Below, one piece after another: positions 1-23,626 of a stretch of 64,000 nt of DNA. The DNA comes from Trichosphaerium sp. ATCC 40318 (taxonomy: Eukaryota > Protista > Tubulinea). Both the position numbers and the translations under genes were made by a program. The notes below the pieces were generated by a model. The model searched no databases and had not been told where the DNA came from. It worked only from the letters and a program-made list of their open reading frames with translations. The stretch lies in assembly GCA_038496445.1 (NCBI GenBank), contig JALMLS010000612.1, positions 434,001-498,000 of the forward strand, in the 5' to 3' direction. Numbering within the stretch: the stretch's first letter is position 1; every line of letters begins with the position of its first letter.

Positions 1-1595
1 TTAAATGTGAAATCCTTAGCAGAATTCTATGCAGTAGGTAGTGTTTCTGTATTACAAAAACAATCTATTAATGCACGTGGGTTTTCAGCAAAGTAAGCCA
101 TAAATAGTCTTTCTCTTTTTTACAAACTATTTAAACACTTTGTTCTAAGCTCTCTTCTCTTTTTCTAGATTCTACGGAGGAAGTATAAGTATCTTACTCA
201 ATAGACTTTATCCCAAGTTTAAGTGGGAACCTTTTCGTTTCAAGTACGGTGTATACCTCGCTGTGCAAATAAGCTTAAGAGCTTTGCTCTTTCTTTTTTC
301 TTATATTTTTACTATGTAGGGTTATGCCAAAGAACCACTGGTCTATTGTAAGAAACCAGATGGATTTCTTTGAGAACACTGCAAGAGAGCTTTATCTGAT
401 GACCCTTGATGAATTTTATGATATGACAACATCAGAATTTATTGATCTTGGCGCTTCTGGTCTTATTCTCAGGCAGTACGACACCAGCAGTTGGTGATTA
501 TTTAGCATATAACGCATACTAGGTATGGTGGATCGTACGTTAAGGCATTACAAACGGTGTATCCCAACTACGAATGGAAAGATTATGAGTTCAAGTACGA
601 CATTCTTTGTCGTGATACGCAAAGTACTAATAAATGTTACAAGGATTGCTCCACGACACGCTTGGGAAAATAAGGAAGGTGTAACGAAATACTTATCTGG
701 TATGTAGTACACTATTTGTAAGTTGTATTTGATTTATTAACAATTAAGTTAGTACTTGAAGACAGGTTACAAATTTCAAGACCTGAAGAATGGTACAGGG
801 TATCATTGGAGAGATTAAAAGAGAATGCAAAAACGACTTTTCTTGCTTCATCTTTCCCCCAGTGTTTGAGTCTACTCCACCCAGAGATGTCATGGGACTT
901 TAGTGTATTCGAATACCGAGCAAAAAAGACAGTACAATGGTACTCTAAACCGGTTTTTTATGAAATACCTCAGGTTTTCCTAAAGCTATTTGTATAAATT
1001 AGGAGTTTGTACCGGCGTGTCGTAGACTTGCTCCCTGATTTTGAGATAAAAGAGGAAATCGATTTAAGTAGATATTTTCAAGGCAAGTCGACACGTGTGG
1101 ATATTTATATTCCTACACTTCGTCTTGCACTTGAGTACCAAGGTAAAGAAACGTAAACTATTTTTCTTATCTTTTGTTTTGCTTTCTAACAACCTTACCA
1201 GGACAACAACACTACCACGATGTTAGTTGCTACGGACTTGCACACATGTGGAAGAGAAATGATAAATTGAAGAAACGTGATTGTGAAGCAATGGGCACGT
1301 GAACATGAGTCACTTTTCGAGTCCAGCATTCACTAAACTTTGAGCTTTCTTCTTACAATAAGTATTTAGGTGTAACTTTAGTACCAATACCGTATTGGTG
1401 GAACCAAGATAAATGGAGCGTTGCTGCAACCATAATGCATTACAGGAACGTACTTCTTTTGTTTAATTATTTATACATACTGATAGTTGTTCTAGACCTG
1501 ATATTCGGTTTACTGGTATACCAAATGGGGTGAAGCCGCTAGTACAACCGACCTCAACGTTTTTTCAAGCAAAAAACAAACAAATCCTGCTGTGA
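1..1595 (+). CDS. Trp-rich tandem-repeat protein with C-terminal PD-(D/E)XK (DUF559/Vsr/RAP-like) nuclease domain; 5' end outside window (paralog A)
   Basis: Spliced exons give repeats (PKNHWS..RNQMDFFENTAREL..DEFY..GASGL..YGGSY..ALQTVYPNYEW), then AKKTVQW..RVDIYIPTLRLALEYQGQQHYH..GVTLVPIPYWW; stop TGA at 1593-1595. Confidence 0.8.
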
Positions 1596-2312
1596 ATAGT
1601 TACTCTATTGAATGTAACCTCAAAAGTGATCGCCGTATGTTTCTCACTCGCGCTAAGAACTTAGATTTATAATCCATGTTAAGGACAAGCATCGGACAAG
1701 AAGTTTGAGCTCTACAGCACCCACCGTAGCAGTTGGCTCTATGCATAGGCATGGCAACTGTTAGATCCACGAGTGCTCGGCAAGCATCACAAATAGTAGG
1801 ACTGACAGGCTGACTCGCTCAGTACAGTAACTTGGTTAACCTGTAGTCGACCATCATGACGATGCTTTTTACCCGATGTACCGCTTAAAGATGAGAACTT
1901 AAACAAAAAAGACCATTACCACTTCCAGCTTTTACTTACGATTAACTTGATGGCAACAATCGCAACAGAGGAAAATCAGTACGTAGTGCTTCAAGTACAA
2001 AACATTTACTTGCCACAAACACAAAAACCCTTAAAACTCTAAAACGGTCTTTTTTGTACTTAGACGCGTGTCTATTCTAAAGGTTACAATAGGACGTTAT
2101 TTTTAGACACTTTAGGGACAGACGCGCTTCTGTGTATTTTTGACTTTGTAGACAGGCCGTCAAAGTTCGCTATAGCGCGTACGTGTACAGTACTATCCGA
2201 TATAATCCATGAAATCGTTGGCTACGGCCAAATTACCATTTCCAAGTTAAGGAGCCTTAAGGTACGACGCACAGCTTAGCTGTGTCTGCCTGACTTTTTT
2301 TTTCCGTTGTAG

Positions 2313-3524
2313 ATTCTGAGGAGGAGTAAAGGATTACGCAATAATACTCGAATCATTATCAATAGGCTTTTTAAATTACGTGACAAGCATGCATACTTAT
2401 TGGCTGGTATTCGCGATCTATCTATACACGAACAATATGATATTACATTCAAGACTTATGATAAACTTGCTGGAGCATATAGACTCAATCTGAGCTATTC
2501 AAGTATCAACGATGAAGGTCTCAGATCTATTGCTGGCGTACACACGCTTAATCTTTGTGCTACACATCATACATCTGATGAGGGTATTGAGGCTCTTAAG
2601 GGCGTACATGAGATTAATCTAGAAAGCAAGAACATTACAGGATCTTGTTTTAAAGGGCTGAAAGGAGTTCACACTATCAATTTAACTGGTTGCCATAATC
2701 TAAGCAATGAGTATATGCATTACCTAAAAGGAGTTCACAAGATAACGCTCTCTTGTTCTAGCATTACAGAAACTGGCATTCAAGCTCTTGCGGGCGTACA
2801 CACAATCGATTTACGAAAAATGAAAGACGGCGCTGTGACAAATGATGCCGTTAAGGCATTGGCTGGTGCTCATACTATTTACATTAACAATTGCCTTAGT
2901 GTCACTGACGAAGGTGTCAAGGCTCTTGCTGGGGCGCACACGCTGTTTTTGGCGTGCCTTGATATTACTGATGACGCTGTCGTTACTTTAGCGGGAGTTC
3001 ATCACATTGTTCTAAAAGATAACCACAACATCACCGATAGATCAATGAAAGCGCTCGCTGGTGTTCACACTATTGATATATGCAATTGTAGTAAAGTTAG
3101 AAGCGAGGGTATAAAGGCTTTAGCTGGAGTTCACACAATCTTTATGAGAGAGACTAATGTTGACGATGAAGCTCTGAAAGCAATAGGTCGTCATGTTCAT
3201 ACCATTTGTCTCTCGCGTTGTATGTCTATTACTGATGCTGGTATTAAGTATTTAACTTCTGTACATACTATTGATATCAGAGGTTGTACTACATTGACAG
3301 ATGAAGGTGTAAAGGCGCTTGCAAATCCTAATATCTTTAAAGTTAATATGAGTGAGATTGACTTAACATTGGATAGTTATAACTGCCTTAAAGAGGCTGG
3401 TGCAAAACACTTAGTGAGCTATGGTTGTCTAAGAATGGGTGATAAAGGAAATTACGGATCCTTCTTTAGAATTAGAGCAACGATTCAGAAAAATGGACCG
3501 GCTTGTGGCTGTGGTTTGTATTGA
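2313..3524 (+). CDS. Leucine-rich repeat protein (RNI/AMN1-like, GVHTI.L..C..ITDEG.KAL repeats); long terminal exon, 5' exons unresolved
   Basis: ORF 2400-3524 has about 13 ~24-aa repeats; the frame stays open back to a TAG acceptor at 2312. Confidence 0.85.
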   Translation: MLRRSKGLRNNTRIIINRLFKLRDKHAYLLAGIRDLSIHEQYDITFKTYDKLAGAYRLNLSYSSINDEGLRSIAGVHTLNLCATHHTSDEGIEALKGVHEINLESKNITGSCFKGLKGVHTINLTGCHNLSNEYMHYLKGVHKITLSCSSITETGIQALAGVHTIDLRKMKDGAVTNDAVKALAGAHTIYINNCLSVTDEGVKALAGAHTLFLACLDITDDAVVTLAGVHHIVLKDNHNITDRSMKALAGVHTIDICNCSKVRSEGIKALAGVHTIFMRETNVDDEALKAIGRHVHTICLSRCMSITDAGIKYLTSVHTIDIRGCTTLTDEGVKALANPNIFKVNMSEIDLTLDSYNCLKEAGAKHLVSYGCLRMGDKGNYGSFFRIRATIQKNGPACGCGLY

Positions 3525-3586
3525 GTTGAAAAATAAAGCATTTCAACAACAAATCAGTATTTATTTGAGTTGAGTCACAGACGAGT

Positions 3587-4870
3587 TTAAACAGCGTCTG
3601 TGAAGTAGCAAATGTTATCAGCGTTTCTTACAGCATTGGTAGGATTAGTTCTTGCCAAGTTTTGACATGCACTTCTTCCGTAAACGTAATCCTAAAAGCG
3701 GAATAAACTTAATAAAAAACCCCGAAAACAAAAGCGAGAAACTTACATTTGTTCCACCAATGGAGTTGAAGTGGGACATCTCGTGTACAATAGTCTCGGC
3801 CCGTTCGTTAGGGAGCGTGAAAAATAGGTTACATAAGTACACACGGCGAGAGCTATCGCTTGGGTATACATAGGCGTAAACATTGCTGCCACAACTGTTG
3901 ACTTTTGTTAGTACATAATGCAGTTACAACTTTGTTGGACATACCCAGCTGGCATACAGTAACAGTTAAACGAGTTAGCGTTCAAGCTACCGTCAATTCT
4001 ATTACACATATCCCTTACATTATTCCAACGCGATCCACTATTGACACCCAACCATGTAGTGGCTTGGCTATTGCTGTAAAAGAGTCAAAAACAACAGTTG
4101 AAAATTCAAAAGAATTTGTTTGAGATCGCGTACCAAGTGCCTGAACGAAGACAGTTGTATCCTCTTGCAGCTTCTTGTTTACCTTGGTTAACGGCACTGC
4201 GAACCTATAATAGTTGTTGGACGATTGTACCAAAATTAAGTTGAAAAACTTGCTTGAGTTTGTTGGTTACTGTTGCAGTTCTGGTAGTCTCTTAGAATAT
4301 CTACTGAAGGCTTTGGCGGTTTTACTTCTGTCACTCTGATTGTCGTTTTAGATCTTGTAACCTCAGATGGTACAACTTGGGCGTAAGAAGGGATTTGTAG
4401 GTCCACAGTGTACTCTCCTACTTTTCCAAGTTGGTACGACAAACTCAGATCAACTTCAATGTTGATAGTGGAGTGTTCTGGTACGACCAAAAACTCTTCT
4501 GGTAGTGGGTATGGTCCTACGAAAAAAGTTGGGTGAACGAACAACACAAAAAACGGATTGTAATTTGGTAACACCCACGTGATTTTGAAAAGCCACGTGT
4601 AATTTGTAATAATTAATGACATTAACAAAAATAGTTACCTCTTCTATAGATAGCACCAGTGTACATTGCCACATCACCGCTTTTGCTTTTTACAAGGAAC
4701 ATGTCACTTCTTATGCCCTCAAAAGGAGTACCCCACTTTAGAACCTGTACAGGGGCGTCTGAAGGGTTTGTAATCGCGTATCCGACTGTTGTAGCATCTT
4801 TTGTGCTTATTGATACTTCAAATGCAGTAACACATAGAGCCAAGGCGAGAGAAAGTATGATCAACTTCAT
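3587..4870 (-). CDS. Secreted peptidyl-Lys metalloendopeptidase (M35 / aspzincin family)
   Basis: Signal peptide MKLIILSLALALCVTA; propeptide VLKWGTPFEGI; YAYVYPSD; HEMSH zinc motif followed by GGT.DY.YG; C-terminal NADN. Confidence 0.9.
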
Positions 4871-5154
4871 GGTAGATTGTTCGGATGTAAAATGGAAAGT
4901 TCCAAGCTCTAAACCAGGGTTGCTCTTACCCTGGTTGAAGTGTACCACGCACAAGAAATGTCACATTTTCGATGGTTTGGCAAACAAGTAGAAGTAAATC
5001 CGTTATCATTCAGCTAGTGCCAATTAATTTATCTTATTTGTTTCTTACACTTTCCACAAGAAGAACAACTAGCTCTCGTATTATGCTTAGCATAAACGTG
5101 CTATACAGTCAAAAACAAGAGAACAAAGTCACATAAGCTGAAGCTAAACTGAAA

Positions 5155-6444
5155 ATGACTATGTCAGGCTCAAATAATCGATCTGCTACCACGTGGTATT
5201 ATTCACTCAATAGTTACTTGTGTTGACTCTCTTGTATTCTCTGGTTAGCACAGAGGACGCGTTATTTATCGACCATGAGCGCATTGACGCCTTTTCTACC
5301 TCATAATCACATAAGTTGCCTCTATTGGCTATTATTCAATAAAGAATCAGACGTGGATACTGTAGAGAAGCGGTATGTGCATAATACAGCAATAATCACT
5401 CTTACGGATAATAGTCACGCTGTACGATCAAAATTCGCCTCTATATTCCCCTGGACTATTTCATTAATTACATGGATCGATTTGCTAATACTGTCAGTAT
5501 CTCTCGACATAACAACAATAAAACGCTACGATACTGCTATCCTAGGCTCGATACTATGGCTAATAGGTCCGTTAATGTATAAACAACGCTTTTTAACAAC
5601 GTCATTTAGGTTTCGCCCTAACGTCATTTTTCGGTACAAGAAATAACGGTATATGGCAGGTAGTTACCTTTTTAACAAGTTATTTACTACAGGTACGACA
5701 ATAAAAAAGCTACAACCTCGTTTTGACACTTTCTTTTCTTTCAGAGCAAAATTCTACATTGGCAGCATTCTATTGAGTTTATAATTGCATTCACAATGAC
5801 ACGTTCATTACTGATGATTGTATTCTTCTTTGCTTATACAAGAATGTCAATAACACTTGACAGATACGCAATGAGATTTCCTACTGGAATTATTTGCTCA
5901 AATATGGCATTAACATTTCTTCATTTACAAACTTTACGTCATGCCTTTACAGATGAATTTGATCTTTATGTTACAATTATAACAGCATTATTTTTTGGAC
6001 TATTGGCGACTATGATTTGGGCTATTATTGGTAAACCATTACAAGGTATCGCGAAATGAACTGTTAATTTTTTTTTGATTGACACATTTCAAAGAAATGG
6101 CTACAAGACGTGCTCAAGTAATCGGTCTTGCTTTCGGACCAATGGTTGTTTCTTGCTTCTTCATGTTCATCACAGCGTGTATAGCATCAGGGAAGCTATC
6201 TGCAGAGGATAGAATACAAATATCATTAGCTGTGGGTTGTACTCTAGGTCTAGGTCTATTTGTCTTACAGTCGACATTAGGCTTTTTTTCATGTAAGCAA
6301 TTTTCTATTATACTTTCTGTTGTTGACCTTCTCTGTTTTATAGCACTTCAAGGCGTTGCTTACAATGCCTTTATTACTGCTTACACTGGTTTCTATTGCT
6401 GGCAGTACTATGTACTGTATAAAAACGAAAATGTGGCGAGATAA
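5155..6444 (+). CDS. Multi-pass membrane protein, unknown function
   Basis: Consecutive hydrophobic exons (5275-5646, 5796-6059, 6079-6444) separated by intron-like spacers; start approximate. Confidence 0.55.
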
Positions 6445-6580
6445 ACTTTGTTATTGTACTATACAAGATACTGAACTATTTTTGTACAAAGTGAAAAAAA
6501 AAAACGCGCTTCTCGTGCTACAGACTTGACCAAGGTTTTTAAATCCATTTTTTTGTTTGTCAACGGCGCAAGTGTTCAAG

Positions 6581-7184
6581 TTATTTTTTGGCTGGAATTG
6601 GTCCTTTTGGCTTACTTTTCAATGCACCGGCGAAGTTCTGTTGTTTGATTTGACGAGCAGTAGCTATAAAGGTGTTAGGAGCTCGGCGTTAAAGAAAAAA
6701 AAGTGAAATTGCAGGAAATTAGAATTTAGTTGCTGTTTTGAGTCGAATAACGCTTGGAGATAATATTTCTATACCCTTTCTCAATTTGTTGTTGAATCCT
6801 CCAACAATTTTTGTTTCTTTTACTATAGCAAGCCCTACAGTGTGTTATAACAACCAGCGTTACGCTAAAACGTACCTCCGTCCATGAAATCTCTGTTTAC
6901 ACGTTGTACCATTAAATTTTCAATATTTGTATTAATCATTTTACCCATGCGCTATTAGGCGTTATACATCGGTTTTGGTGACGAAATATGGCTACCTTTT
7001 TAGATTTTCCAGCTAGAGCTTTTCTACCTTTAGCATTCCTCTTCACTAGCATTATATAAGCCCATAAATATGTTTAAAAACCAGTACATCCTCGTCTAGT
7101 GACTTGCGTCTTTTTGCGAGCCTTAGACGTTGTTTTCTTTTTTGTTCTGAGCTGATTATTCGATCGTCTACCTCCTTGAGTCAT
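6581..7184 (-). CDS. Small basic protein, possibly UPF0390/C19orf53-like
   Basis: Spliced MTQGGRRSNNQLRTKKKTTSKARKKTQVTRRG..RKALAGKSKK..KETKIVGGFNNKLRK..ATARQIKQQNF..PAKK*; family call is from weak remembered similarity. Confidence 0.35.
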
Positions 7185-7320
7185 TTTGTGCTTGAACTAT
7201 GTAAGTTTATCTGTAACTTAACCGATACTTAAATAATGTTGAGCTGTACTAGTACACGTAACGTAGAATACATGGTTAAGGATTTCAGCTTTGATTTCGA
7301 CGTGTGTCTAAACAATAATA

Positions 7321-10300
7321 ATGAGTAGTATCAAATGCGCCTGTACAGCATCGAGGGGATATATCAGCGGTACTAAAAGGCGATACTGCATTAAACGTCA
7401 TGCATTACACATACAAAGTCGCTCCTACGCAATAAAACTACGCAAAAATATCATTGGTGAGCTTTATAGTAGTGTCAAATATCCAATAACATATTAAATC
7501 AGGAAAGCAAGAGTTACTCACTCCAGAAGGGCAACGACAGTTTTTTGATAACGCAGCTAAAAAATTTAACGTTTCTGGTAAATCTGATTGGGATAAATTG
7601 TCAGCGAAAGAAATGTTCAAACTTTCAGGCGGTTATATCATTATGAAGTGCGTTAATCATCCTGTAATCCTGATTATATACCTTACGCGTATGTAGGGAG
7701 CATAGATTCGATCTTCAGAGAGCTCTTAAAGCTGTATATTCAGAGACAGAACTAGAAAAAGAAACACCAGAGAAAGCTTTTTTTGATATTCTCGCTTCTT
7801 CTCATTGGCCTGCTGGCCCTGATCGTTGGAATGACAGAGATTACCAACTTCGATTCTTGGCAAGGCTTTGTAAGTTCCTAAAGATAGATCCTAAAGACCA
7901 GGAAGGATGGCACGTGATTTTTTGAAAAGTTTACTTTTTATGCGGAAAACTAACATATTTTACTAGGTACAATATGAACTATACTGTAGTGAAAGAGAAC
8001 GGTGGTGAAGGATTTTTGAATGAATACGGTGGTTCCTTTAGCGTTGCACTGTTGTCGTTGTTTCCCGATAGACCTTGGAAAATCTGGAAGCTTAGCAAAG
8101 GTTTGATTTTACTTTTGTTGTTATTGTCTTCTATTGACTTTATTCTCATTGTGGGTTTAGAGGGTCAAGTGCCCAACGATTACTGGAAAAAACATAATAA
8201 TCTACGAATGTACTTTGATTTGGTTGCAAAGGAACTAAAGATGGATAATGCACCTGTTGAATGGTACAAGCTAAACCCGAAACAAGTAGTCAAACTTGGA
8301 GGACAATCTTTGTTAAAAGAGTATGAATTTTCTCTTATCAAAGCGCTCAAAGTAGCATATCCCAAGGAGGAGTGGCGTATCTGGAAATCAGGTTTGTTAG
8401 TTTTGGTGCATAGTTTGTTAATTAATCAACGTACTAGAGCTTATACCACCACAGTTTTGGGAAAACTTGGACAATATTGTAGAATTCTTGAGGTACCATA
8501 ACCCTTATTGCATTCTTTGACCTTTGTTTTTCAAGAGACACAGAAAATGAGCTACGTATAACAAATGCAAATCAGTGGTACTTTGTTAGTTACTCAGATA
8601 TTGGTAAGTGCCTTTTTTTGTTTTTGGGGAACTCGTTAACCTATCACTAGCCTCAATGCAAGGTGAGGTATTGGTTAGAGATTATAAACATTTTTTTGAA
8701 GAGGCATTAGTCACGTGTAAGTCGAAATCATGTGATGTCATTTAGTTAATAACTGTCCGCAGTGCATCCTAACTTTAAGTGGGACTTTTCAAAGATACTT
8801 CATACGCAGCGTACACGTGCATTAAAGTATGTGATGCATCTTATTTATATGTTTCTAATGTTGTAAAGAATGGCTCTTTCAATACTACGAAAAGAGTTTC
8901 CTTCGACTGAGCTTCAAAAAAATGCAGTTCTAACGCTCGAGGCGCATGAAAGCGACGAAGTAGATAGAACTATTAAGTTTGATATGTATTTACCCTCCCT
9001 TCGGCTGGCGTTAGACTTTCAAGGTAAAAAGCAAGCACATCAATACAGAAAAAATCATTTAAAAGTAGTAGCTCACTACTTAGTTTATAGACGAAATTTC
9101 AGCTGCTCGAAAGTCTCATGATATTCTACCTGGTAATAGCAATCAAATAGAGGAAGAAAATAAAATAAAAGATAGCAAAGAAATGGGTAATTGAAAGAAC
9201 AACCAAATGTATCAAAGCTAATTACTACTTTTAGATATAACACTTATAGTAGTTCCTTATTGGTGGGATAGGAAAAAACACTCGTTACTTGGTACTATTG
9301 GAAGTCGTCGCCCAGATATTGAGATTAATATTCCCGATAATGCTGAGCCATTTTCTTCAAAGCAGTTCGAAAACAAAGACAAGTTTGGTAAGAAAAATGA
9401 TGTTAACTTAAGTTATTTCTTACATTTATTTAAACAGATGAAATTGAGTTTATGCTTGCATCAGAGTTCGACAAAACTGTTGACCCAAAAAATTGGTATT
9501 TCCTTAACCTTAAAATAAGTCATTTAGTTCTATTTAGGTGGATACAAGAACAATTAGATGGCCTAAGGTATGGATTTGGTTATCTCTCGATTTAAAAATT
9601 ATAGGGCTATGTGGACAGGTTCCGAGTTTGTTTGTCGTGGTGGACATACACTCGCATTACCAGCTGATTTAAAGGCTCTCCTACCAAAGGTACATACTGT
9701 GGTAAATGTTTAAAGTATTTATTATCATCAGGGAGTAATATTAGATGGAGAATTACAGTACGGAATAAAACAAGAATCTTTCAAACATAAATAATAAAAA
9801 ACATAGCATTCGACGAAGGAACCACTTGACAGTTGTTAATACATTACTCAATGAAGATCCTAACTGGAAAAACGTAAAATTTCACGTCTTTGATACACCA
9901 ATACAAAATTGCTGGTACGCTTCCTGAGTATTTTGTGGAGGAATAAACAAGCCAACTTTTTTTTTGTTTATTCAATTAAAGGTACAATTTGAGATACAAA
10001 CGTCTTAAAGAGCTGATACCGAATTCCAACGATTTTGTTTCAGTAGTAGAAACTTGGACTTGTAATGACAAAAAACACTTGGTTCAAGAATTAAAACGAA
10101 TAGTAGCACTTGGAGGCACGTTCCAAAAATACTACTTGCTTCGTTTTTATTATGACCTTCTCATGCTTTTAACAGGCGAGGGTATTATTCTTCGAAAGCC
10201 CAATTCGTACTATACTCAAGGAAGAACACATAACATGATCAAGATAAAGGTAAACAAACTTTGAAGAAGATAAGCTACTCTTTGAACACAACTTAATGTT

Positions 10301-10669
10301 GTTCTTAGAAATATCGTGATGTTGAAGTAAAGTTGCTTCGTGTAGAAAAAAACTCAACACATTTGCATTGCCAACTGTACGTCTGTCATAAATTGTACAA
10401 AGCCTTTATATGTTTATAATTGTAGACCAAGTGGTAAGGAAATCAAGGTGTGGTGTAGTAAAGCAGTGCACGATGATCCTCCAGAATTAGGTAGCTGCAC
10501 TACACTTTAAGTATCTTTATTGTGAGCTTATACATAACTTATAGAGGGTGTCATTATAATAAAATATACAGGCAAAACTAAGGAGGGTAATTTGAAAGAA
10601 CCATTTTATCACAGAGAATGTCTAGAGTATGATTGGGAACACGTGTGTAAAGTATACAAAAAGTCATAG
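7321..10669 (+). CDS. Mitochondrial-presequence repeat protein with degenerate PD-(D/E)XK domain and C-terminal ATP-dependent DNA ligase fold (adenylation + OB), motif I Lys->Gln (paralog B)
   Basis: N-term MSSIKCACTASRGYISGTKRRYCIKRHALHIQSRSYA; Trp repeats; KFDMYLPSLRLALDFQD..VVPYWW; then FMLASEF..NWWIQEQLDGLRAMWTG..VILDGEL..FHVFD..GGEGIILRKPNSYY..GRT..MIKIK..IKYTG..EPFY; junctions across the nuclease-ligase boundary are in frame. Confidence 0.85.
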
Positions 10670-10901
10670 AAGCTGGGTAGTTACGTTGTATAAAAACCTC
10701 AATATAAAGCAAACGTCGTCTTCCCATGTGTAGTATTGTTACATAAATGTGAAGTCTTTTTGGTACACTCCATTAAATACTAAAAGTGCATGCGAGATGT
10801 AACTACTTGTATAAACATTTATTCGTTGCATCTGCATAAACTAAAACTTGAGTTTTTTATTTATTTAATCATCTATGTTGTTTTCTGTCACGTGATTTTG
10901 C

Positions 10902-11810
10902 CTAGCTCCACCTAACTGGACGTTCTACACATTTAATACCCAATGACTCAATACCTTTACGTGTTATATCACAATACTCACCAATTTCAACAACCTTGAG
11001 CGACTTCATATACTTCAAACATTCATCTGTAATAGTAACATAATGTGATACAACTAATTCTTCAAGGTTTACTAGTCTCTTCATACCTTCATCTGTAACG
11101 TCGAATAAACGAGCAAGTACTAGGTTTTTGACATTTTTCAACTCGACGATACCTGCATCTGTTATATCTCCGCTTACCTGAACCGTATGGACATTTGCGA
11201 GGTGTCTAAGCCATGAATCTTTTGCGTGCCACACTGTAATCTTATGTACACCCTTGAGTGCTTCTATACCTTTAATAGTGACGCGATCACAACCAGCAAT
11301 GTCTATTGTATGTACATCTTTTAACTCTTTCAAGCCTTCATCAGTTACGCCCTTACAATTAGATAATAGAATCGTGTGAACGCTTCGTAGCGACTTTAAT
11401 GTAACGTCTGATATTTCTGCTCCGCAAAGGCTTATCTTATGAATAGAGTGTTTACCACCTTGAAGTAGCGACACCATTGCTTTATCTGCGTTGCTTATAG
11501 CGTCTAGATTTACTGTATGTATGCCATAAAGGCAAGCCAAGTCGCTATCAGTTACCTTATAACCAGCACAGCTGAATTCAGTGTTTTTTAGCAACGGGCT
11601 ACCCTTTAGAAAGCGACAATCCGACGCTACTTTGTCTCGTTTCAATTTTATAAATCCAAAGCCGATATTACCACGTATGATGTTGTTAAAACGTCGAGAG
11701 ACTACAGTAGACGCTATAAGCTGTTTTTTGTTCAAATACAGTAGAATGCACGTTAATATCTCTGGTGGTAAGCACTGGGTCGAAAGAACTTGTCCCCCTG
11801 CTTCGGACAT
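10902..11810 (-). CDS. Intronless F-box/LRR protein
   Basis: F-box LPPEILTCILLYL..VSRRF, then VHTI.L..C.GVTDEGLKEL repeats. Confidence 0.9.
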   Translation of the reverse strand: MSEAGGQVLSTQCLPPEILTCILLYLNKKQLIASTVVSRRFNNIIRGNIGFGFIKLKRDKVASDCRFLKGSPLLKNTEFSCAGYKVTDSDLACLYGIHTVNLDAISNADKAMVSLLQGGKHSIHKISLCGAEISDVTLKSLRSVHTILLSNCKGVTDEGLKELKDVHTIDIAGCDRVTIKGIEALKGVHKITVWHAKDSWLRHLANVHTVQVSGDITDAGIVELKNVKNLVLARLFDVTDEGMKRLVNLEELVVSHYVTITDECLKYMKSLKVVEIGEYCDITRKGIESLGIKCVERPVRWS

Positions 11811-12104
11811 AGTGCAATTGTGTTTGACGTGTTTTGACTACTATCTATTTTTATCGCAAGGACAGTAACGGGTGGGTAAAAAAACTTCCGGATTTTGCCT
11901 TTCCGCAGAAAACTGCTCATCAGGAACTAAGTGGTCTAGAGTTTTGAAGTCTTGATACCTATTACCGGAATGGTTGACAAAATCACGTCAAAAGATTGTT
12001 ATATGCACTTGGTATTGCGTTTGTACAAAGTGCACGACTGGTTACTTCATGGCAATTCTGAATTGTTTTTGTTTATTGTACTTTTTTTTTGTTGAATTGA
12101 GTTT

Positions 12105-14830
12105 TTACTTTAAACCAGTTGGTTCATCAATGATATCCTCGATTAAAGGAGTATTATCGTTAATGGACTCCCATACTTTTAATCTACCTTCTGCAGCTAC
12201 TTTTTCACATTTAATCAAAGCCTCAATTGCTTTCCGCAAATCTTTTTGAAACTGTTAAAAAAAACATTATAAAACAGAACATACCTGCGTCTCTTTCTTT
12301 CTGTGTTATCTCAATAGATTTCTTACATGCTTCTGTGCGAGTAGTTACATCTTTTGTAGGCGTATAATTACCCTTATTGTAAGTACTAGCATCGCTAAAA
12401 TCGTATGTAACAATAGCCGCATCGCCCTTCAAAAAAAAAGTGAGAAAAAAAAAATGTCAAAAAAAAAGACTCGATTCTTCGTACTTGTTCTGTATCAAAT
12501 ATCAATTCATCTCTAGCAGCAAGCATCTCTTCTACGGATCTTACATTTCTAATCCAATATTCTATTATTGAATTGAACTGAAGACTGAAATGTGTTCCAG
12601 AATTGTCGTATGCCCTGCGCTTGTTTGAGACGAAAAAGAACATGCAGAAAAGAAAAGAAAAAAAAGGTGATCATGGCCTATGCCTACGTACCGTGACAGT
12701 ACGTCAATATGCTCACGGACACTATTTATTGTCTTTAGATAATCGTCAGGATCACTAAGGAAAAGCCTTGCTTGATGATCTTGCTCTGTACGCCCAAAGT
12801 CTCCCATTACAGATTTCAAGCTCATAATCAAAACAGATAGCTCTACAGTAATCGCTTTAGTGTTTTATGTCACATCCCTTTAAAATAAAACTTCGTTGTT
12901 GTTATGTACGTACCCATATACCCTACAGCAATATCGCGTCCATGATAGAATATTTTTGAATGTGTCTTCTGAGTGTGATGTTGATTTTTTCTGTATTCTG
13001 TTGTCCATTCTTCTTTTTCTTTTACATACACTGTTTTTGACGATAATCTCTTCATTTTATCCATAAATGACCCTGTTCTCTTTAATGGTTTTTGTTCCTC
13101 TGATTCATCAGATAACGGTTGTGTAGGAGGTGGTTGGGAAGCAGCTTTTTTAATACTTTCCAGATCAAACTCCTAAGTATACAAAATGTTAGTTTTTTCT
13201 TTTATCATTATCTGATATTATAGTTATGACATACGTCTAACTCTACAAACATTTTAAGTATATTATCTTGACAAATAATTTCATGTGAGAAACACTTGTT
13301 CAAGAAAATCTCAAGTCCTTCTTTTCGGTACCTAAACAAATTGTTATGAAATTTTTTTCAAATCAAATTCATCTTTTGACTCTTTTCTGACGTACTCCAA
13401 GAAGTTCGGCTCAAACCTCGATGTGAAATAATTGAATGATTTTTGTGGTATATTTGGTACTACTATATCAACGTATCTACAAAACTGTGAGAAGATGCCA
13501 CGTGTAGTTTAAAATATTCCTTCGTACGTTTTTATTAAATGTGCTCTTAAACTTTTAAATTGATTGTAACGTCTCACAACATGAATCGGACAACTTTTGA
13601 CACCTGTTTTAGGCTCTACAGTGAATCGTATATATGGTTTGATGCCACCAACTCTCTCTGCACCAATTACACAAACAGGTAATTGCAACTTTTTTTCAAA
13701 GAGAAAGTGTTAGTTTCAAAAAGAAAGTATATTGTTACGCTACCTTTTTAATTTCCCATCTATCTTGAGCAGAAGGTATATCCAATTCCGCACAATCAGT
13801 ATCAAGCCATACTTTACTATCGGGTGTAGGCAACGGTTCATACTTCATTGGACTATCTGCAAAAAAATCAACAAAAACTAACCAAACCCTTTCCATTCTC
13901 ATAAATTTACTGCACGTGATCTATTTCTAAAGTTGTTGCGCTGTGTTTTTGATAGACAAATGAATGGGCTAAAATAAATAAACAACGAAATTAGCACGTA
14001 CCTTTGACTACAGGCTTTACAAAATCACTTGCAGGCGTATCAACATTTTCACGTTCATTCTCTTCAATTGCCTTTATAACTTCAGGAGCGGTTGAAACAA
14101 CATTCTCTTCTTCATTGACTGTCTGTGTAGGTGGTTCTATAGACTGAGGTTCCTCAAAATCATGTCCGTCAGCCGAGATTGTCGACTTTTCTGGGTCGTT
14201 GTCATTTTCTTCTTCTTGCTCTTCTTGTTCTTCCTCATTTTCTTTGGGAGGTTCCTCCTCAACAATGTCTGAATAAAGCTGTCCATTTGGATCTATAAGG
14301 ATACCGTCCAAAGACACCAATTGGTTTGGTCTACCTGGTGTCACGGGATCAATATAGTTTGTATTTAAAGTGTCTACGTACTTTCCCAAAGCTTTTTAAC
14401 GTCTTCGCGGTAGTTTTGCGTTTGGGTGATTGGATTGCCTGTTAACACAAGGTGTACAAGTTTTGGCGCGGCGAGGAGCCCTTTTGACGCATGTAAGTGG
14501 GTTTGTAAAGTTTTCGTTGGAATTGTTCTTGTGATACCTTTTAGCTGTCTAACGAATTTGAGGTTATTATTTGATAGGTCTATACACTCCAAACCCTAAA
14601 TGATGACATGTTGACACTAAAACAGCGAATAGTTTAAAATACGCACTTTGAACTTGGCAAATGATGCTATTTCATCTATATTTTTGTTTGTAATGAAAAG
14701 TTTACGAGCCTGTAAAACTGTTACGCCAAAAATTAGGAAAGAGGGAGCAAACCTTCGTAATATCAACTGATCGCACTTGTGTAGTGTTTGTTAGTTTTGA
14801 TCTACAGTTTTCGAACGTCAACTTTACCAT
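12105..14830 (-). CDS. LRR (SDS22-like) + acidic linker + PX-domain protein
   Basis: IDLSNNNLK..LVLTGNPI..NYR (LRR cap); PX motif VVRRYNQFKSLRAHL..VPNIPQK..YRKEGLEIFL at ~13290-13680. Confidence 0.75.
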
Positions 14831-14959
14831 CGTGCGTCTATGGCCCTAGAAGAGGCGCGAAGCTACTATGGTACCACTATACCCTATCCAAAAACTTTTT
14901 AGCTTAGCACAGCTCAGACTTAACATAATTTCATTTATTGCTCATCCAAAACAACCGCT

Positions 14960-15238: not shown

Positions 15239-15618
15239 AAAATCGGTGACGTGGTACGTTTTCTTTGCTCCACCTTAGTCAACGCAAAGTAGTGACGTAT
15301 GATTTACGTACTAACACACTTCGTAGTGTGGCATTGACGTGCTCAGAAAAAAAAACGCGCCAGTAAACAAAAGACTGTAATAATATGTAGTGCAATACAG
15401 AAATTCGGCAAACAACATAGCTGTACCCTTTATTTATTTTTGTCTTTTTTTTCAAAAAATGAGTGTTGTCATTGTCGTTGTGACCTTAGTAGCGAGGAAA
15501 TCATCGTACCAGTGAGTTTCTTAATACAAGTAAAGTTTAGAAAAAAGAAAGTGAAAACTTGAGTTGACAGAATACAGGTTTTATTTCACAGTTGGCGATT
15601 TTAGCCAAGTATAATTAT

Positions 15619-16762
<1,144 letters not shown>

Positions 16763-17189
16763 TTATGATTTTTTGAACTTTCGTTTCAAGTATTCATTTC
16801 ACCGAAAACTTCGCGAACAAATTGCTGGAAATCCGTTCGTTTAACCCTATTTCCGATCAGATTCGAAGACTACTACCTGCGTGAATAGTTGTTCAACACA
16901 AATGCTGTACTTGTCAAGGCTCCGCTGTAAACTCCCAAAATGATGTGAACATACGTGCTTCTCATTCGATTGTACGCGTTGTGCTGCTCTATTCAAGCCA
17001 GCGCACTGTTTTATTTACTTTCAATTTGCGTTTTACTCCTGCAAAAGTAGAGTGGCCACGCGCACTTCAAGTTTGAAGCCTGCACTGAGTTCTTAGTTCT
17101 GCGCTCAGTGTAATTATTTTTGGTTTATCACGCTTGTTCTACCATGCTTGTTCTTCTTGGGCGAATTCATTGCCGACGTCAGTGATGAT

Positions 17190-18703
17190 TTATTTCTTCT
17201 TTTTGTAATTCATCACCTTGTACCTTTGTTATGAGCTAACCACGATTCGCACAGATGCACAAGGTTTCTTTTTAAATGTAAGCACGTTTTACGTCTCTCA
17301 AAGTAATTTGTTGGTGCCTTTGCTTGTGCTTCTTGTTTAGGCGTTCAAAACGATGCCATTCCCAGTTAAAGTCTGGTTCTAACTCCTCTAGAACGTGAGG
17401 CCAATATTTCATAAGACCTTCACCACCCATATTTTCAGTAACCTCAGTAAATGATATGCGATACCTAGTTGGCATGTAAGGCTACAAACATGAATGAAGT
17501 ACTGGAGGCCAGGAACTACAAAAACAGAAGTATGAGGTACCAGTCATCAGGTGCCATAATGCTATGTTGTTTTTTGACACTTTGTAGAAAAGCTATGCGA
17601 TTATCTTTTATTCTCCAGTATCCTCTAGGTGCGTGCCTGATGCGTAAATATGCTATAATGCAATTTTTTGGACGTACTTGAATCTGTGTAAAGACCAACT
17701 ATAGTTCGGGTAAGCACCTGAAAGACATGCGGCGAGAGAGTTTCCATACACTTTTCTAACCAAAAAGTGTCAATGATATGATTTCTCATAGAGTTGTACA
17801 GAATACTATCGCCTCCAAGTGTGATGATATCTCTATTCGTAACACTATACCAACCCGATAGATCTTTAATATTGTGTTCCTGTGCGACGTCATTCAACAT
17901 GCGACGCTGATTGTCAATACTTGACCAATAATTCATGGGAGCACAGCTAATAAAGCACTATTTTAGTATTTGTCTCTTCAAGTTTATGCACGTGATAACT
18001 ATGTGCTGCTACTCAAAACGCTGGAAAGCGTACGTGAACTTTCTTCCGTCCCATTCGTATGTAGAATAGATTGCTTGTAAGCAAGCAATAAGTGAATTAT
18101 TGTAATAGTCACCGAAATAGGAATTAGAAGTGGATGGTTTTAAAAGTTAACGTACAGTATTGTTCTTGCCCCGTTTACAAGTATATCTTCTTGACGTACG
18201 CTATACCAATCTTCCATGCATTTGAGGTGGAGGTTAGATGCAATAGTGTCCATCATAAGGCGTTGATGTGTAATATTATTCCAGAAGTTTTGAGGAGCTT
18301 TTCTGAAGTCGCTGAGCGTCTATTACCCTACTTACAGTGCGTACGTAAAAAGCCAAGGCTTCCATGTATATCTTGAATAGATTGAAGCCAAACACGTCGC
18401 CATATCGCGCCCATGCCTTTTTCTACGCCAAGTAAGTTGTGTATGCTGTTTTAACGTTTATGTAAATGGGTAAACTTTAAAACGGCCTCAAATAATGCCT
18501 GTGTTAGAGCTATACTTTATGGGCTGTCTAACTACCGCGTCGAATTGAATGTACGATATCTTGTACCAATCGTCCATGCATTTAACATCCAACCGCTTAG
18601 AAGCTTTTGAAACCGAGAGTTCGTCAGCCAATCTAAACAAACGTCACAATTTGACACAAGCCATAATCACGGTTTACAAATCTGTAGTAGCTCGTAATCT
18701 CAT
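17190..18703 (-). CDS. Trp-rich tandem-repeat protein, repeat-only (paralog C); both ends approximate
   Basis: VKCMDDWY; PMNYWSSIDNQRRMLNDVAQEHNIKDLSGWYSV..LGGDSIL; APRGYWRIKDNR; MGGEGLMKYWPHVLEELEPDFNWEWHRF; no nuclease motif seen. Confidence 0.7.
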
Positions 18704-18845
18704 CTGGCGGCAATGGGAATTATCTTACTGTACTAGTTGCTGCAACAGGGTACATAGAATTACTGGCTTAGCAGCACTCGTTAAGTGCAAGCTTCATCAT
18801 GCTTTTTATTTACAGGTAAAGTACAGAGGCTCGCTTTGGTTTCAT

Positions 18846-19866
18846 CTAAGCGGTTGATCCAACTAGTGGTTTGAATGCCTGTTTCGCGGACAGTATGAGC
18901 AATCTATAGACGCTTAGAGAGTAGGATCAAAAGAAAACTGTTACCTTTGGGCTGATTTCTTTTTCCTGTATTTGAACTTTTTCCAATCCCACTTAAAATG
19001 TTTGTACAGACTTTGAAGTGCCAATGGGAAGTAAGGAGTAATACCAGAGCCACCCAATAGATATAATTGATCGATAGAAACGTTATACCACGATGAAGGA
19101 TCGTTTATAGTAAGGGTATTTTCGACTGTCTTGAAGAATGTAACGATATTTGATTCTGTTTGCCAAAATCCACTTGGCTTAAAATTTTTTCGTCTAAAAG
19201 ATTGTAAGTGGGTATGATCATAAGGCACAAACTAACGTAAAAACAAAGGCCTCGCTTTCCCATTCAAATTCTGGATATATTGCTCGAAGTGCAGCATCTA
19301 GACTTCGATACCTATGGAGTTGTTTAATAAATGTTGAGATGGTACAAAATGCTTGCTTGGAAGATAGGATACTAGCGCCACCCATCCGCCGTGTATGTTT
19401 ATTTGACACATTGTACCAATCTGACAAGCTCTTTATATTCATTTCCTCTGCTAATTCATCAAATCTTTCCCTCTGGTTTGTAACAGTATGCCAAGAACCA
19501 TGAGGTGCACACCTTTAACAAAAAAAATTAAATCATGTGAGAAGTGTCAAAACGTACGGAAACCTCCAGAAGTGCCATTCGTGAGTGCAAAACGTTTCTT
19601 TTAACAAGCGAAACGTTGACGTACAACTAAAACAATAAGCTAACGGCGAGAATAGGTTTTCTTTTTTTCGAAAGCGCTTATGAGCGTTTATTTGGTCTCC
19701 TTGCGTAGTACCTTCGCTTAAAGTGCCTTCCTCCGGCTTTTATTACGTCGGTATGTGGTACTTTGTACCAATCATCTAGTACTTTAACGCCAAGGGTTTG
19801 CCCGATAATATTAAGCTCGAATACAGTATTTGGCAATACGGTTGCAGAAAAGGAGCGTGTAATCAT
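18846..19866 (-). CDS. Trp-rich tandem-repeat protein ending just before the nuclease domain (paralog D)
   Basis: MITRSFSATVL..GVKVLDDWY..GG; IKSLSDWYNV..GGASIL..AIYPEFEW; PSGFW..SSWYNV..GGSGI..WDWKKFKYRKKKSAQRLL..STA*. Confidence 0.75.
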
Positions 19867-20774
19867 TTTAATATCTTCACCAACGCATAGAATAAGTAAT
19901 GTAGTTATTTATGTTGGTAACTACACTCTCCCAACGGAAAAAACCCACAGGATTAATAAGTGAGAGCTGAAAAACCGCTTAAGTTTTGATAGCTGTTTGA
20001 TTGATTTCGTGTAGAAATGCTGATACTTTCTTCGCGAAAAGGTTTTCTCTAGGTTATAGTCTGTTAAAGCAGTGTAGTGTAAAGTACGCAAGTCCAATTT
20101 TTGATTGATTTTTTGAACGAAAGCGAATTGGTTTTTGTTGCAACAACGATTGGTAGCCACTCAAGATTGGTACGTGTTCTTTTGGTATTTACCACAATTT
20201 TTATTTTTTGAATTGTGAATGCTTCAAATATGTTTCCCTCGAGTTATCTTTCAAGAGCAGCTTTGTCAACTGCTTGGAAAATAAAACTCGGATTTGACAA
20301 TCGCGAGTATAAATAATCAAAAACAAAACAAAAAATCTCAGCAGTAGCTGGCTGAGTTGGACGCCTGTATGATTTCCCGTCCCTAAAAGGTTACAGCAAA
20401 ACAAAAACATAAAAATAAGTGCAAAGTAAAATTGTTAGCAGCTATCGATGAGCTAAAAAGTTCAAGTGAAAACAATTGCACAAAAAAAAAAATTCAATTC
20501 TAACTACTTTTTTTCTCGTATTGATATTATCATGTCACATGCTTACTATTTTTGGTAATATTTCTAAATTTACGTATCAAAAAACCTCCTTATAAATACT
20601 ACTAGTACTGGTGAAGCGTGTAATGTTATCTTTCACTTTTTTGGCTAGTACTTCTAAAATGGGTGTTCTCACCAATATACTACTGTTATGTACTATAGTA
20701 CCAGATGATTTTATTTACAATGATTCTCAGTATGGGTAATGTACAGATGCTACAACTTTTCGATTGTTTTGTTT

Positions 20775-21376
20775 TTAGTTAGTTATTTTTTCAGTGACTT
20801 TCTTCGATGCCCATTCCTTGTCCAAGTACTTTCTTTGAAAGAAGGAAAATTCTCTTCTATCTACACCCTTATCTCTAAGATTTGCTTCATAATAGGCATT
20901 AACATCAAGATTGCATGACGTCTCCATTCTACATAAGTGCTCTTCAACCCAACTTCCTTTAGTTGCACATTTTATAACTGAAACATGTACACCTAGGCAT
21001 CTATGCATACCAGCACATTGAACACATATAAGCGTTTTAAGAGATACAGAGGCCCATGTAGGATCTACAAGGACGTTAGAGCTAAATCAACTAAAAAGGT
21101 GAAAAAGTTCAAATAACGGATTATATCTACAAAAAAGTTTTTCGCCTACTTCATCTCGAATGAGACCTGTGTTGTGCCCGTTTATGATTTTTTGGTCACA
21201 ACAAAGTGCACTTACTCAAAACTGCGCTAAGTGTTGATGAAGGAGCAAGCTTTGACAAATAGCGTTTGCGTAGTTTATTGTATTGTTTACGTACTGGCTT
21301 TTTTGCAATCAGCACATTTGTCGTTTCCTGGAAGCTCCAATAACTTGGTTACGCGTTCCTTAATATCTACACTCAT
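20775..21376 (-). CDS. Small ArfGAP-domain protein
   Basis: PGNDKCADC..PTWASV..ICVQCAGMHRCLGVHVS (C4 zinc finger with catalytic Arg). Confidence 0.9.
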
Positions 21377-21483
21377 TTATTCAGACAGTTACGTTTAAAA
21401 GTGTGCTACACATATGTTGAAATACAAAGACTTTACTATACACAACTTTCTACTTATGGTGTTAAATCTCTTACAAGATATAT

Positions 21484-23626
21484 TCACATAACGGGTCTTT
21501 CTACATTTGCCCACATGACCGATGACCTGTTTCTGCGATTTATATCTAACGATGCGTCCATTGAGTCTTCTGAGTGATGTATCGCTTTGATCAATCCAGG
21601 TAATTGTTTTGATACAAGGGTTGCAATGTTGTGGTAACTAAGGTCCATCCAATATGGTACAACAATCAAATGAATGCCTTTTAGTAGAAATATTAGCGAC
21701 AGATGACACTTTTTAGACTAACCATTTTCTTGGCATAGCGTAGCCTTTTCTACATCTCTACTTGATGCAACTGAAGCTGGAAGTGCTGTTGCTGGTATGT
21801 CATAGTAATGTTGTTCACCTGAGGTTACAAGGTTAAGTACGAAGGCAAACACATAGTTGTTCTTACCTTGATATTCGAATGCAAGGTTAAATGCTGGAAC
21901 AAAAATGTCGAGATTGACAAGTCCTCCAGTCAAGTCACCAGTGCCAATAAATTGCTCTTCTTGTACAACAGTATTAGGAAATAACGCCTCAACACATTCA
22001 AGTAAAATCCTGGAGACGAAAACAAAAAATAAGTAAAATACGATAAGAATTATGTCACCTTTGTTTAGCTTTCTTGATGTGATGGGAAAACTCAACCCAC
22101 CTCCATTCATATTTTGGATATATTGTTTTGAGATTATAAGGATAGTACGAGAGCATCCCTTGTCCACCTCTTTCGCGTATTTGGCGAGAAGAGACACGAT
22201 ACCTTAACCAAAAAGTTAGGTCTATTTATCACTTTTGCTTACCATTCAGAAGGATTATTCAGGTGTAGAGACTTTGTCAAACGCTGTAAAAACTTTGTTT
22301 GATTTCTTTTACGTTTCCAGTATCCACTTGGTTTAGTGTCTCTAAAAAATCTGTCAACAAAAAAGACTTATTAAAATAGAAAGAGTTTGTCAAAAACAAC
22401 ATTTAACGGTTATAATAAATGCATATACACCCTCAACGTACACAGTTTTAAATTGGTGGTGTGGGTATAATTCCTTTAACGCAGTTATAACACTTCCATT
22501 GTACCTAAAGGTTATTTTTTAAATGATTTTGTCTTGTTGTTTTTAGTCTCAACGTACTTGCTAAGTGTGCTCTTTCCTCCATGTTGTATGTACAAACTTG
22601 CTGGTATCGTTACCATATCATCTAGCAACTTAATATTCATTATAGATCCAACTTCATCAAACACTTGACGCTGGTGCGACACATCATCCCAAAAACCCCA
22701 TCTTTAGATAATTTTAGTATGTTTTCAAACGTTTTTTTCCAACAGTCACGTGTACGTTTTATAGAAATTGTTCCATGGATGGCTGGGATACAATTCTTTG
22801 AGCATTTTGGAAACTGAACCTTGGTACCTGATAATAAACGTCAGTAGAGTATAATCTCTCAAAATCATACTTTTGACTGAAATTGGATCCGAATAGCCCC
22901 AAGACATCTTCACTGTGTATCCTGCTCCAATCGTCCATTATTTTAATACCTACTTCCATAGCCACATCATCTAAGATATCTCTTTGGTTTTCAGGGGAAC
23001 CTACAATATCAGCTGAACTACAACAAAGTCAGTACAAACAAAAAACAAATTCAAGATTCACCTGAACTTGTGAGCACGCCACTGTTGTTCAGGGTACACA
23101 ACAGACAGTAGTCTGAACAAGGAGAAGTTATATCTGCAGTTACAATAAAATCAATCTGATTAGTTGGTAGTCATTACCTTTCTGGTGGTACACCGTAGAT
23201 GTTATCACTTACATCTTTGAACGATTTTGTGTACCAGTCATCCATCATTTTGACACGCAATGTCGCTGATAGAGCATTTATAGACGCTTTTAATTGCTTT
23301 AGTTGGGTACTGGCATTTCGTGGATGGCTTGAAGCCGTTGAATGGAGGGATCTATTTCGTGATTAATTGTTAATTAACGGCATGTCGTGTATTAGTTTTT
23401 CTAGGCGTAGGGAAGTATAATAACTGCAGCTCGGCGATTTTACAAATCAAATACTAACAGGCGAATATATACACGTACGTTACTCTAAAACGCCCTGATG
23501 TACGTATACGACATTTTGTACAAGTTTTGGTAACTACTTGCGTTCTAACGCCCTGAACATTACTGTTAGTGATTATGCAGGCCAGCAAAACGTACAGAGT
23601 GTAACATTGTACGATCTGTTAGCCAT
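21484..23626 (-). CDS. Trp-rich tandem-repeat protein with C-terminal PD-(D/E)XK nuclease domain (paralog E); start approximate
   Basis: LHSTASSHPRNAST..VKMMDDWY; IKIMDDWSRI; KPSGYWKRK; NLDIFVPAFNLAFEYQGEQHYY..RDVEKATLCQENGIHLIVVPYW. Confidence 0.8.

Follow-up and report, generated by a model that had tools for sequence, protein, structure and literature searches.

The nuclease I-Bth0305I pairs N-terminal DNA-binding modules with a C-terminal nuclease domain, and the catalytic set of I-Bth0305I and Vsr consists of a Mg-binding Asp, a general-base His and a second Asp (PMC3239194). Vsr, DUF559 and DUF2726 domains stand beside RAP domains among the PD-(D/E)XK clades (Steczkiewicz 2012), and a 2021 survey described RAP as "absent, or at least undetectable" in Amoebozoa and Excavata (PMC8190603). 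Here we analyse a 64-kb stretch of DNA from the amoeba Trichosphaerium sp. ATCC 40318 (contig JALMLS010000612.1, positions 434,001 to 498,000; hereafter the window), an intron-rich eukaryotic nuclear region of ~38% GC, which carries five genes, A to E, for proteins built from a tryptophan-rich repeat. Their anatomy, a repeat array joined to a Vsr/RAP-class nuclease, is a known kind of plan; the family itself appears undescribed within the literature searched. The genes and the parts of them discussed below are as follows.

1-1595, forward strand: gene A, its 5' end cut by the window; two units, then a complete nuclease tail
7321-10669, forward strand: gene B; basic N-terminus, 3-4 units, degenerate nuclease tail, Lig E-like ligase module
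9548-9562, forward strand: ligase motif I variant EQLDG of gene B (GAA CAA TTA GAT GGC), in which Gln replaces the AMP-accepting Lys
17272-18703, reverse strand: gene C; ~4.5 units, KKHKQR linker, no nuclease
18846-19866, reverse strand: gene D; 3 units, KKKSAQR linker, intron 18904-18944, no leader, nuclease lost
21484-23248, reverse strand: RNA-supported coding part of gene E, from MMDDWY to the stop; 5 units, KKAKQR linker, intact tail
23249-23626, reverse strand: possible 5' extension of gene E; exon 23249-23351 joined to 23479-..., with ATGs at 23606 and 23626

A tandem repeat family and its unit

A hidden Markov model (HMM) of the repeat was started from a single unit of gene B and run iteratively over six-frame pieces covering all 64 kb of the window; it gave 16 significant matches (E values from 7e-25 to 8e-6) and one weak match at 0.0045. 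All matches fell within 327-23281 and were confined to the five genes, A and B on the forward strand and C, D and E on the reverse strand. The consensus, P-x-G-Y-W...N-Q-R-x-F-x-D-x-L...L-x-I...D-W-Y-x-V...G-G-x-x-L-L...Y...S...L...Y-P-E-x-x-W, agrees with that of an earlier note on this DNA, which had proposed that five paralogs are built from a Trp-rich unit of ~70 residues; the proposal stands, for the same genes on the same strands. The repeat family is real and lies far beyond chance.

A profile of 15 window units was searched against 1.84 billion representatives, recovering 8,258 cluster representatives at E<=1e-3 (4,406 at <=1e-10), the longest arrays counting 25 units. Cavostelium apophysatum, Physarum polycephalum, Heterolobosea sp. 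BB2 and MMETSP protists supply the named members, and some members have been named automatically as "RAP domain-containing protein" or "DUF4046 domain-containing protein" in databases. The signature E[YF][QD]GxQH lies ~60 residues past the last unit in 103 of the 151 retrieved proteins. Relatives carry a nuclease, a nuclease and a DNA ligase, or a nuclease and a Pol X polymerase, which bears out the earlier picture of an expanded repeat family with exchangeable enzyme tails. In an AlphaFold model of one relative, P0109 (467 residues; predicted local distance difference test score, pLDDT, 91.6), five helices per unit are followed by an alpha/beta core. The largest array seen belongs to an intron-less member of 2,124 residues, with 25 units and the nuclease, at 6001-12375 of a 1.37-Mb metagenome contig (L001); this long contig is eukaryotic, and the gene stands there beside NIPSNAP, kinase and TIM genes.

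In AlphaFold models, the ~70-residue unit folds into five helices of 14, 6, 6, 6 and 8 residues (single-unit pLDDT 88.9). Its conserved positions include a framework of Trp and Pro, and a polar N-Q-R triad opens helix 1 in nearly every unit. The arrays are net-basic, with a median isoelectric point of 9.1 versus 6.2 for the tails. No Pfam family matched the unit above threshold. The best score for PF13255 (DUF4046), on relative P0242, was 21.7 bits, below the cut-off of 22.8, and PF13255 gave no match at E<=1 among ten exon pieces from the window; searched singly against Pfam, these pieces returned a ligase match only, being too short or divergent for DUF4046 or DUF2726. Several relatives do carry a precomputed PF13255 match. 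Furthermore, the unit model superposed on a bacterial Atlas cluster that is 98% PF13255 with a template modelling (TM) score of 0.73, on a Discosea "DUF4046" cluster with 0.69 and on DUF4046 proteins of the AlphaFold database (AFDB) with 0.57-0.64. The unit is therefore predicted to have the DUF4046 fold. The resemblance to DUF4046 given in the earlier note was right in kind, as the weak PF13255 match and the TM scores of 0.69-0.73 indicate, and it stays below the Pfam threshold. DUF4046 was not mentioned in the literature searched. The analogy with PPR and OPR repeats drawn in the earlier note is not supported, since the unit is a 70-residue, five-helix domain and not a helical hairpin; no PPR, TPR or OPR match was obtained in Pfam, and the unit is not a PPR, OPR, HPR or TPR solenoid.

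The unit also matched predicted structures of uncharacterised proteins from dictyostelids, planctomycetes and a giant-virus metagenome. Neither unit nor tail gave a significant match in profile searches against the sequences of solved structures, and the viral structure library held no match to the unit. TetR, Slx4-CCD and SAM-like bundles were considered as counterparts and set aside at noise level (Z<=4.2); identities with (HhH)2, Myb and SAM were likewise dropped as unsupported by Foldseek and VIA-align. One bacterial protein in AFDB, named "DUF559 domain-containing", has a unit-like domain, which suggests that unit and nuclease may long have been paired; a scan of prokaryote genomes with a single tail found no relative, and the bacterial pairing is read from AFDB names only.

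Nuclease tails and partner modules

Tails in the window are split by introns and were for that reason assessed only through the family tail profile, which was built from 70 tail sequences. D52, E63, G66, H69 and D88 (numbering of the P0109 tail) are invariant in all 70. In their Asp-(17)-His spacing and second Asp, the tails agree with the catalytic set of I-Bth0305I and Vsr (PMC3239194); genes A and E keep this Asp/His/Asp set, and gene B does not keep the His block. Pfam DUF2726 (PF10881, PD-(D/E)XK clan) matched 40 of the 70 tails at E<=1, the P0109 tail scoring 26.6 bits, above the gathering cut-off of 24.7. The phage family phrog_9084, "homing endonuclease", matched all 70 (best 1e-17) and phrog_7140, "intron encoded nuclease", matched 68, while Pfam RAP (PF08373) matched a single tail at E 0.033. 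DUF559-type enzymes have Asp where EYQGxQH has Gln. No Pfam match to FAST_1 or FAST_2 was found in 10 full-length members, and PADLOC and NCBIfam yielded nothing for arrays or tails.

Structural comparison placed the tail equally close to several of these groups, with Z scores of 9.9 for the Vsr-DNA complex 1cw0, 9.8 for I-Bth0305I (3r3p), 9.4 for the FASTKD4 RAP domain (9gek), 10.4 (9i05_Xr) and 9.3 for Toxoplasma mitoribosomal proteins and 7.6 for Tetrahymena 6z1p_AS; the matching C-terminal domain of Toxoplasma 9i05_Xr is taken to be RAP-type. Since the tail is as near in structure to RAP as to Vsr and I-Bth0305I, the fold does not discriminate between them. The comparison with RAP/PD-(D/E)XK architectures made in the earlier note survives for RAP in this structural sense and not by sequence, where DUF2726 and phage homing-endonuclease families take its place. 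On sequence and model comparison, the tail falls among the PD-(D/E)XK nucleases, in the Vsr/EDxHD/DUF2726/RAP structural class.

Some relatives carry further enzymes. Their ligase module matched 8u6x (E 8.5e-35), 4d05 (3e-29) and PRK09125 (1e-54), and is predicted to be a minimal DNA ligase of the Lig E/PRK09125 type; their polymerase module is Pol lambda/beta-like (Pol X; 5e-26). Ligase fusions recur in P0228, P0120, P0125, P0254 and gene B. In the MMETSP protein P0228, a presequence-like leader and three units are joined to a nuclease and a ligase, both intact (CEKLDGIR in the ligase), and P0238 from Cavostelium has an added Pol X module. In a Physarum transcript, P0237, the C-terminal part of the ligase (motif V, OB) precedes seven units and there is no nuclease; this order is the reverse of that in gene B and P0228, and the transcript is possibly 5'-incomplete. 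Because these fused enzymes act on DNA, DNA is no less likely than RNA to be the substrate.

In gene A, two units (327-488 and 755-913; unit HMM E values 7e-18 and 1e-12) precede tail exon blocks at 1001-1147, 1201-1296 and 1360-1455. These blocks cover profile positions 25-134 (E 5.5e-11, 1.8e-5 and 1.4e-7), and their translation reads DIYIP..LALEYQG / QQHYHD / RNDKLKK / VPIPYWW. By the tail profile, both A and E possess complete tails (D...EYQG.QH...D..K...VPYW), in line with the intact nuclease motif first noticed in both, and A and E would be the canonical cutters of the locus.

Gene B, whose exon structure is an approximate model only, has units at 7526-7651, 7968-8096 and 8172-8393 (3-4 units in all). 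Its tail blocks, 8879-9031 and 9234-9347, read LALDFQG and lack the middle block, that is, profile positions ~77-105 with the central His. A Lig E-like module follows at ~9440-10648, with a Pfam DNA_ligase_A_M match of 5.1e-6 on 9980-10261, so that the reading of B as a degenerate nuclease plus a ligase fold is upheld. In tblastn, the alignment of gene B with P0228 and P0134 spans the end of the nuclease, the ligase and the OB region. Gene B lacks the adenylatable lysine of the KxDG motif expected of an ATP-dependent DNA ligase; motif V, GEGIILRKP, is present. P0228, P0120 and P0125 keep EK(L/F/Y)DG, and the Gln variant is found again in P0134 as SEQLDGVR, within a region closely similar to gene B. 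The recurrence of the Lys-less motif with such surrounding similarity argues for a conserved sub-type and not for random decay. Gene B belongs to this sub-type, with a Lys-less ligase-like module and, here, a degraded nuclease, and from these two features its product probably binds or senses and has no enzyme activity.

Transcripts, N-termini and genomic setting

Gene models were made with a dynamic-programming gene finder using splice sites and codon usage. At one penalty setting it reproduced the ten internal introns of gene E; other settings spliced B, C and D too much or too little, and the models of C and D were adjusted manually with the RNA joints as a guide. For RNA support, the stretch 17650-23640 (5,991 bases) was compared with three small runs of assembled contigs.

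Gene C has a short N-terminus (MRLRATTD and a 45-nt intron) and four RNA-confirmed introns (17947-18033, 18112-18155, 18303-18344 and 18423-18515). Its stop lies 14 codons past KKHKQR, the donor site after the linker is lost, and the tail profile matched at linker level only (E 0.11); gene C is expressed, as an array-only form. Directly downstream of it lies a polyubiquitin gene (15622-16762, reverse strand) with ~five head-to-tail units and two introns of ~80-110 nt (GTAYGT...YAG), and an RNA contig seems to run well past the stop of C towards it. In gene D, the intron after ...SAQ(R) occupies the same position as that of gene E. Past this conserved intron, an 18-codon relic of the first tail helix (LLILSAKQAFKP..., LLILSAKQAFKPLVGSTA) ends in the stop at 18846, and the three runs contain essentially no RNA cover of gene D. 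The shared intron followed by the relic points to a copy that lost its nuclease, and D may be a decaying copy. The earlier note had listed C and D as repeat-only, which agrees with the linker-level traces that the tail profile leaves in them and with the tail-helix relic at the end of D.

Gene E is transcribed and spliced, with 11 listed GT..AG introns of 40-127 nt in the three RNA runs. The spliced product contains five units, of which the first is truncated, then the linker HHIKKAKQR and a tail with LD...FEYQGEQH...RDVEK...VVPYWMD; the spliced reading is ...LDIFVPAFNLAFEYQGEQHYYD...RDVEK...IHLIVVPYWMD. Its nearest full-length relative is P0109 (33% identity over 387 residues, E 3e-64). The intron 23352-23478 in the 5' region is RNA-confirmed, and the spliced RNA has no in-frame ATG upstream of MMDDWY. 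The leader LHSTASSHPRNAST is coding only if another short intron, unseen in the listed joints, is removed. In its favour, the residues ahead of MMDDWY align with helix 1 of the C and D units, which makes such an intron plausible. Two routes were considered: ATG 23606 with GTACGT...CTAAC...TTCAG, which has the better splice signals, and ATG 23626 with a 50-nt intron whose branch site is too near the acceptor. With the inferred intron, the N-terminus is rich in Arg, Thr and Ser and acid-free for ~65 residues. The two ATGs stand 20 nt apart in different frames (23604-23626, reverse strand), and, depending on the short intron chosen, one of them makes an upstream open reading frame of 12-17 codons that overlaps the start. 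A ribosomal protein S30 (Fau-like) piece lies just upstream of the 5' end (23723-23998, reverse strand); it is on the same strand less than 150 bp away, which leaves little room for a promoter and 5' untranslated region of E.

Presequence-like N-termini were scored by a crude composition test, at least four K/R and at most one D/E in the first 30 residues, among members with at least 25 residues before the first unit (n=115). The rule held for 54 of these 115 versus 5.8% of internal control windows, an enrichment of about eightfold, and many of the leaders look like classical presequences. The composition of the leaders speaks for mitochondrial targeting in much of the family and accords with the presequence-like N-termini anticipated for it. 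Of the three mitochondrial presequences proposed in the window, only that of gene B is straightforward (7 K/R and no D/E in the first 30 residues, basic and acid-free); in gene D, MITRSFS runs directly into helix 1 of the truncated first unit and is no presequence, and that of gene E depends on the inferred extra intron. Nothing relevant to the family was found in the text on the 2026 Acanthamoeba mitochondrial proteome or in the Andalucia supplements.

At the DNA level no repeats are common to the five paralogs, and terminal or flanking repeats are absent; the genes around them are ordinary nuclear ones (F-box/LRR, ArfGAP, M35 aspzincin, ribosomal S30 and polyubiquitin). Transposon cargo, which the earlier note had named as an outcome that would speak against it, is ruled out by these absent repeats and ordinary neighbours. 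Nor are the genes homing endonucleases of the mobile kind: they are nuclear, and spliceosomal introns number up to 11 or more in them. Among viruses, >500 IMG/VR loci, some of them in giant-virus metagenome-assembled genomes, encode the same type of nuclease at 35-50% identity, and units were found in none of 81 viral open reading frames carrying the nuclease. The five genes are old residents of the nuclear genome and not cargo of a transposon or a recent virus.

Among the neighbours, two F-box/LRR genes flank gene B (2064-3521, forward strand, and 10905-11837, reverse strand; Pfam F-box 5e-7, LRR_6 6e-11) and may form a second locally duplicated family. A secreted-looking aspzincin (M35, lysine-specific metalloendopeptidase) with an HEMSH motif lies at 3648-4960 on the reverse strand, and an ArfGAP zinc-finger exon (Pfam 1.8e-19) at 20778-21086, also on the reverse strand, between D and E.

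Proposed function and known systems

A canonical member would consist of a leader, often presequence-like, an array of 3-25 modules, a KKxxQR linker and the C-terminal nuclease. The array would bind nucleic acid and position the nuclease, and sub-families with an added Lig E-type DNA ligase or Pol lambda/beta could cut, fill and seal within a single chain. Action would most likely take place in the mitochondrion, with organellar DNA as the likeliest substrate, through site-directed nicking or cleavage with repair, and with RNA as a live alternative. The analysis establishes the anatomy and homology of the proteins, the expression and splicing of C and E and the extent of the family; binding to nucleic acid, location, substrate and any sequence specificity are inferred. 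Taken as a whole, we give about an even chance to the explanation in which the five genes belong, as diverged tandem paralogs, to a very large and so far uncharacterised eukaryotic family of array-guided nucleases with ligase and polymerase variants, probably mitochondrial and acting somewhat more likely on DNA than on RNA. Several points weigh against it. A predicted TM score of 0.59 leaves the relative placing of the units unfixed; the unit has no convincing counterpart in the PDB (Foldseek E>3, best VIA-align Z 4.2); and nucleic-acid binding by a DUF4046-type unit is backed by no experiment or solved structure. A leader is missing from 127 of 242 members that start with Met, and in the window only gene B has a clean one. 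The modelled tail lies near RAP domains of RNA-binding mitochondrial proteins, which leaves room for RNA, and the need for dozens of DNA-directed mitochondrial nucleases in one cell is unexplained.

A possible, if on balance unlikely, alternative is that the proteins are organellar RNA-processing factors like FASTK, OPR-RAP and HPR-RAP, the array picking a mitochondrial transcript or rRNA piece and the tail binding or cleaving RNA. The structural closeness of the tail to the FASTKD4 RAP domain and to the Toxoplasma and Tetrahymena mitoribosomal proteins fits this, as do the whole-chain Foldseek look-alikes, which are FASTK-family and plant RAP proteins, and the RAP names given to some members in UniProt and the Atlas. 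Large, fast-diverging, presequence-bearing paralog families are typical of gene-specific organellar RNA factors such as PPR and OPR proteins, a pattern shared by the present family, and it could fill the RAP role in Amoebozoa and Excavata, where named members occur. However, Pfam RAP recognises one tail in 70, sequence homology leads to DNA homing-endonuclease families, the full DNA-nuclease catalytic set is conserved, and the fusions bring in a DNA ligase and a Pol X polymerase.

Viral occurrence of the nuclease and the homing-endonuclease names of the PHROGs families would suit domesticated or selfish homing-endonuclease-like proteins, or an anti-viral restriction of giant-virus or foreign DNA, acting in nucleus or cytoplasm rather than in the mitochondrion. 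Nucleocytoviricota metagenome proteins among the Atlas and AFDB neighbours, rapid paralog divergence in tandem clusters, which fits an arms race, and the half of members without a leader point the same way. We consider this improbable given that units are missing from the nuclease-bearing viral reading frames and from the viral structure library, that no PADLOC defence family matches, that the genes have many spliceosomal introns, ordinary neighbours and no terminal repeats, and that presequence-like leaders are strongly enriched. It is very improbable that the arrays serve as protein-protein or membrane scaffolds, with tails reduced to relics that have no nucleic-acid function: the nuclease is indeed missing in 48 of the 151 top members and in C and D, and the unit fold offers no functional clue, but the catalytic residues are invariant across 70 diverse tails, the arrays are basic and all fused partners are nucleic-acid enzymes.

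Within the preferred explanation of array-guided, probably mitochondrial nucleases, a stronger form, which we regard as doubtful, has the arrays reading nucleic-acid sequence module by module, as programmable, nuclear-encoded, mitochondrion-targeted, site-specific DNA endonucleases, some with their own polymerase or ligase. If so, they would constitute a TALEN-like cut-and-repair toolkit shaping or policing mitochondrial DNA in amoebae and other protists. Thousands of proteins from Amoebozoa, Heterolobosea and further protist groups are built to this plan of repeat array and enzyme tail, and the family may be a functional counterpart of RAP, PPR and OPR proteins in lineages with no detectable RAP. 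Should the substrate be DNA, the family would add a class of organelle-directed, array-guided endonucleases that has gone unrecognised, some of them with a ligase or polymerase built in. With either substrate, it offers a new modular, putatively nucleic-acid-binding scaffold and a handle on the maintenance of mitochondrial genomes or transcripts in protists.

DUF4046 proteins of bacteria and Amoebozoa, whose function is not known, have the same five-helix fold; the window family differs in iterating the domain 3-25 times and in a sequence similarity under the Pfam threshold. LigD-type repair enzymes and mitochondrial Pol beta-ligase pairs likewise combine nuclease, polymerase and ligase for end or nick processing. 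LigD uses other nuclease and polymerase families, whereas here the modules hang on a repeat array and gene B has both its nuclease and ligase active sites altered. RAP repeat proteins (FASTK/FASTKD1-5, plant and algal OPR-RAP, apicomplexan HPR/RAP mitoribosomal proteins) resemble the family in their organelle-targeted leader, helical repeats and Vsr-like C-terminal domain, in a tail that ends in a ...G(I/V)xL(I/V)xVPYWW-type strand and in lineage-wise expansion. In contrast to the FAST_1/FAST_2 or 34-40-residue hairpins of RAP proteins, the window family has a 70-residue DUF4046-type domain; it also keeps the catalytic residues fully, and its DNA ligase and Pol X fusions are not reported for RAP in the literature examined. 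The EDxHD enzyme I-Bth0305I and the Vsr/DUF559/DUF2726 group share a homologous catalytic domain with the family, and I-Bth0305I has the same order of binding modules followed by a C-terminal nuclease. Unlike homing endonucleases, which are intron- or intein-encoded and bind through NUMOD or helix-turn-helix motifs, the window genes are nuclear, host-resident and multi-intron, and their putative binding part is a long DUF4046-type array.

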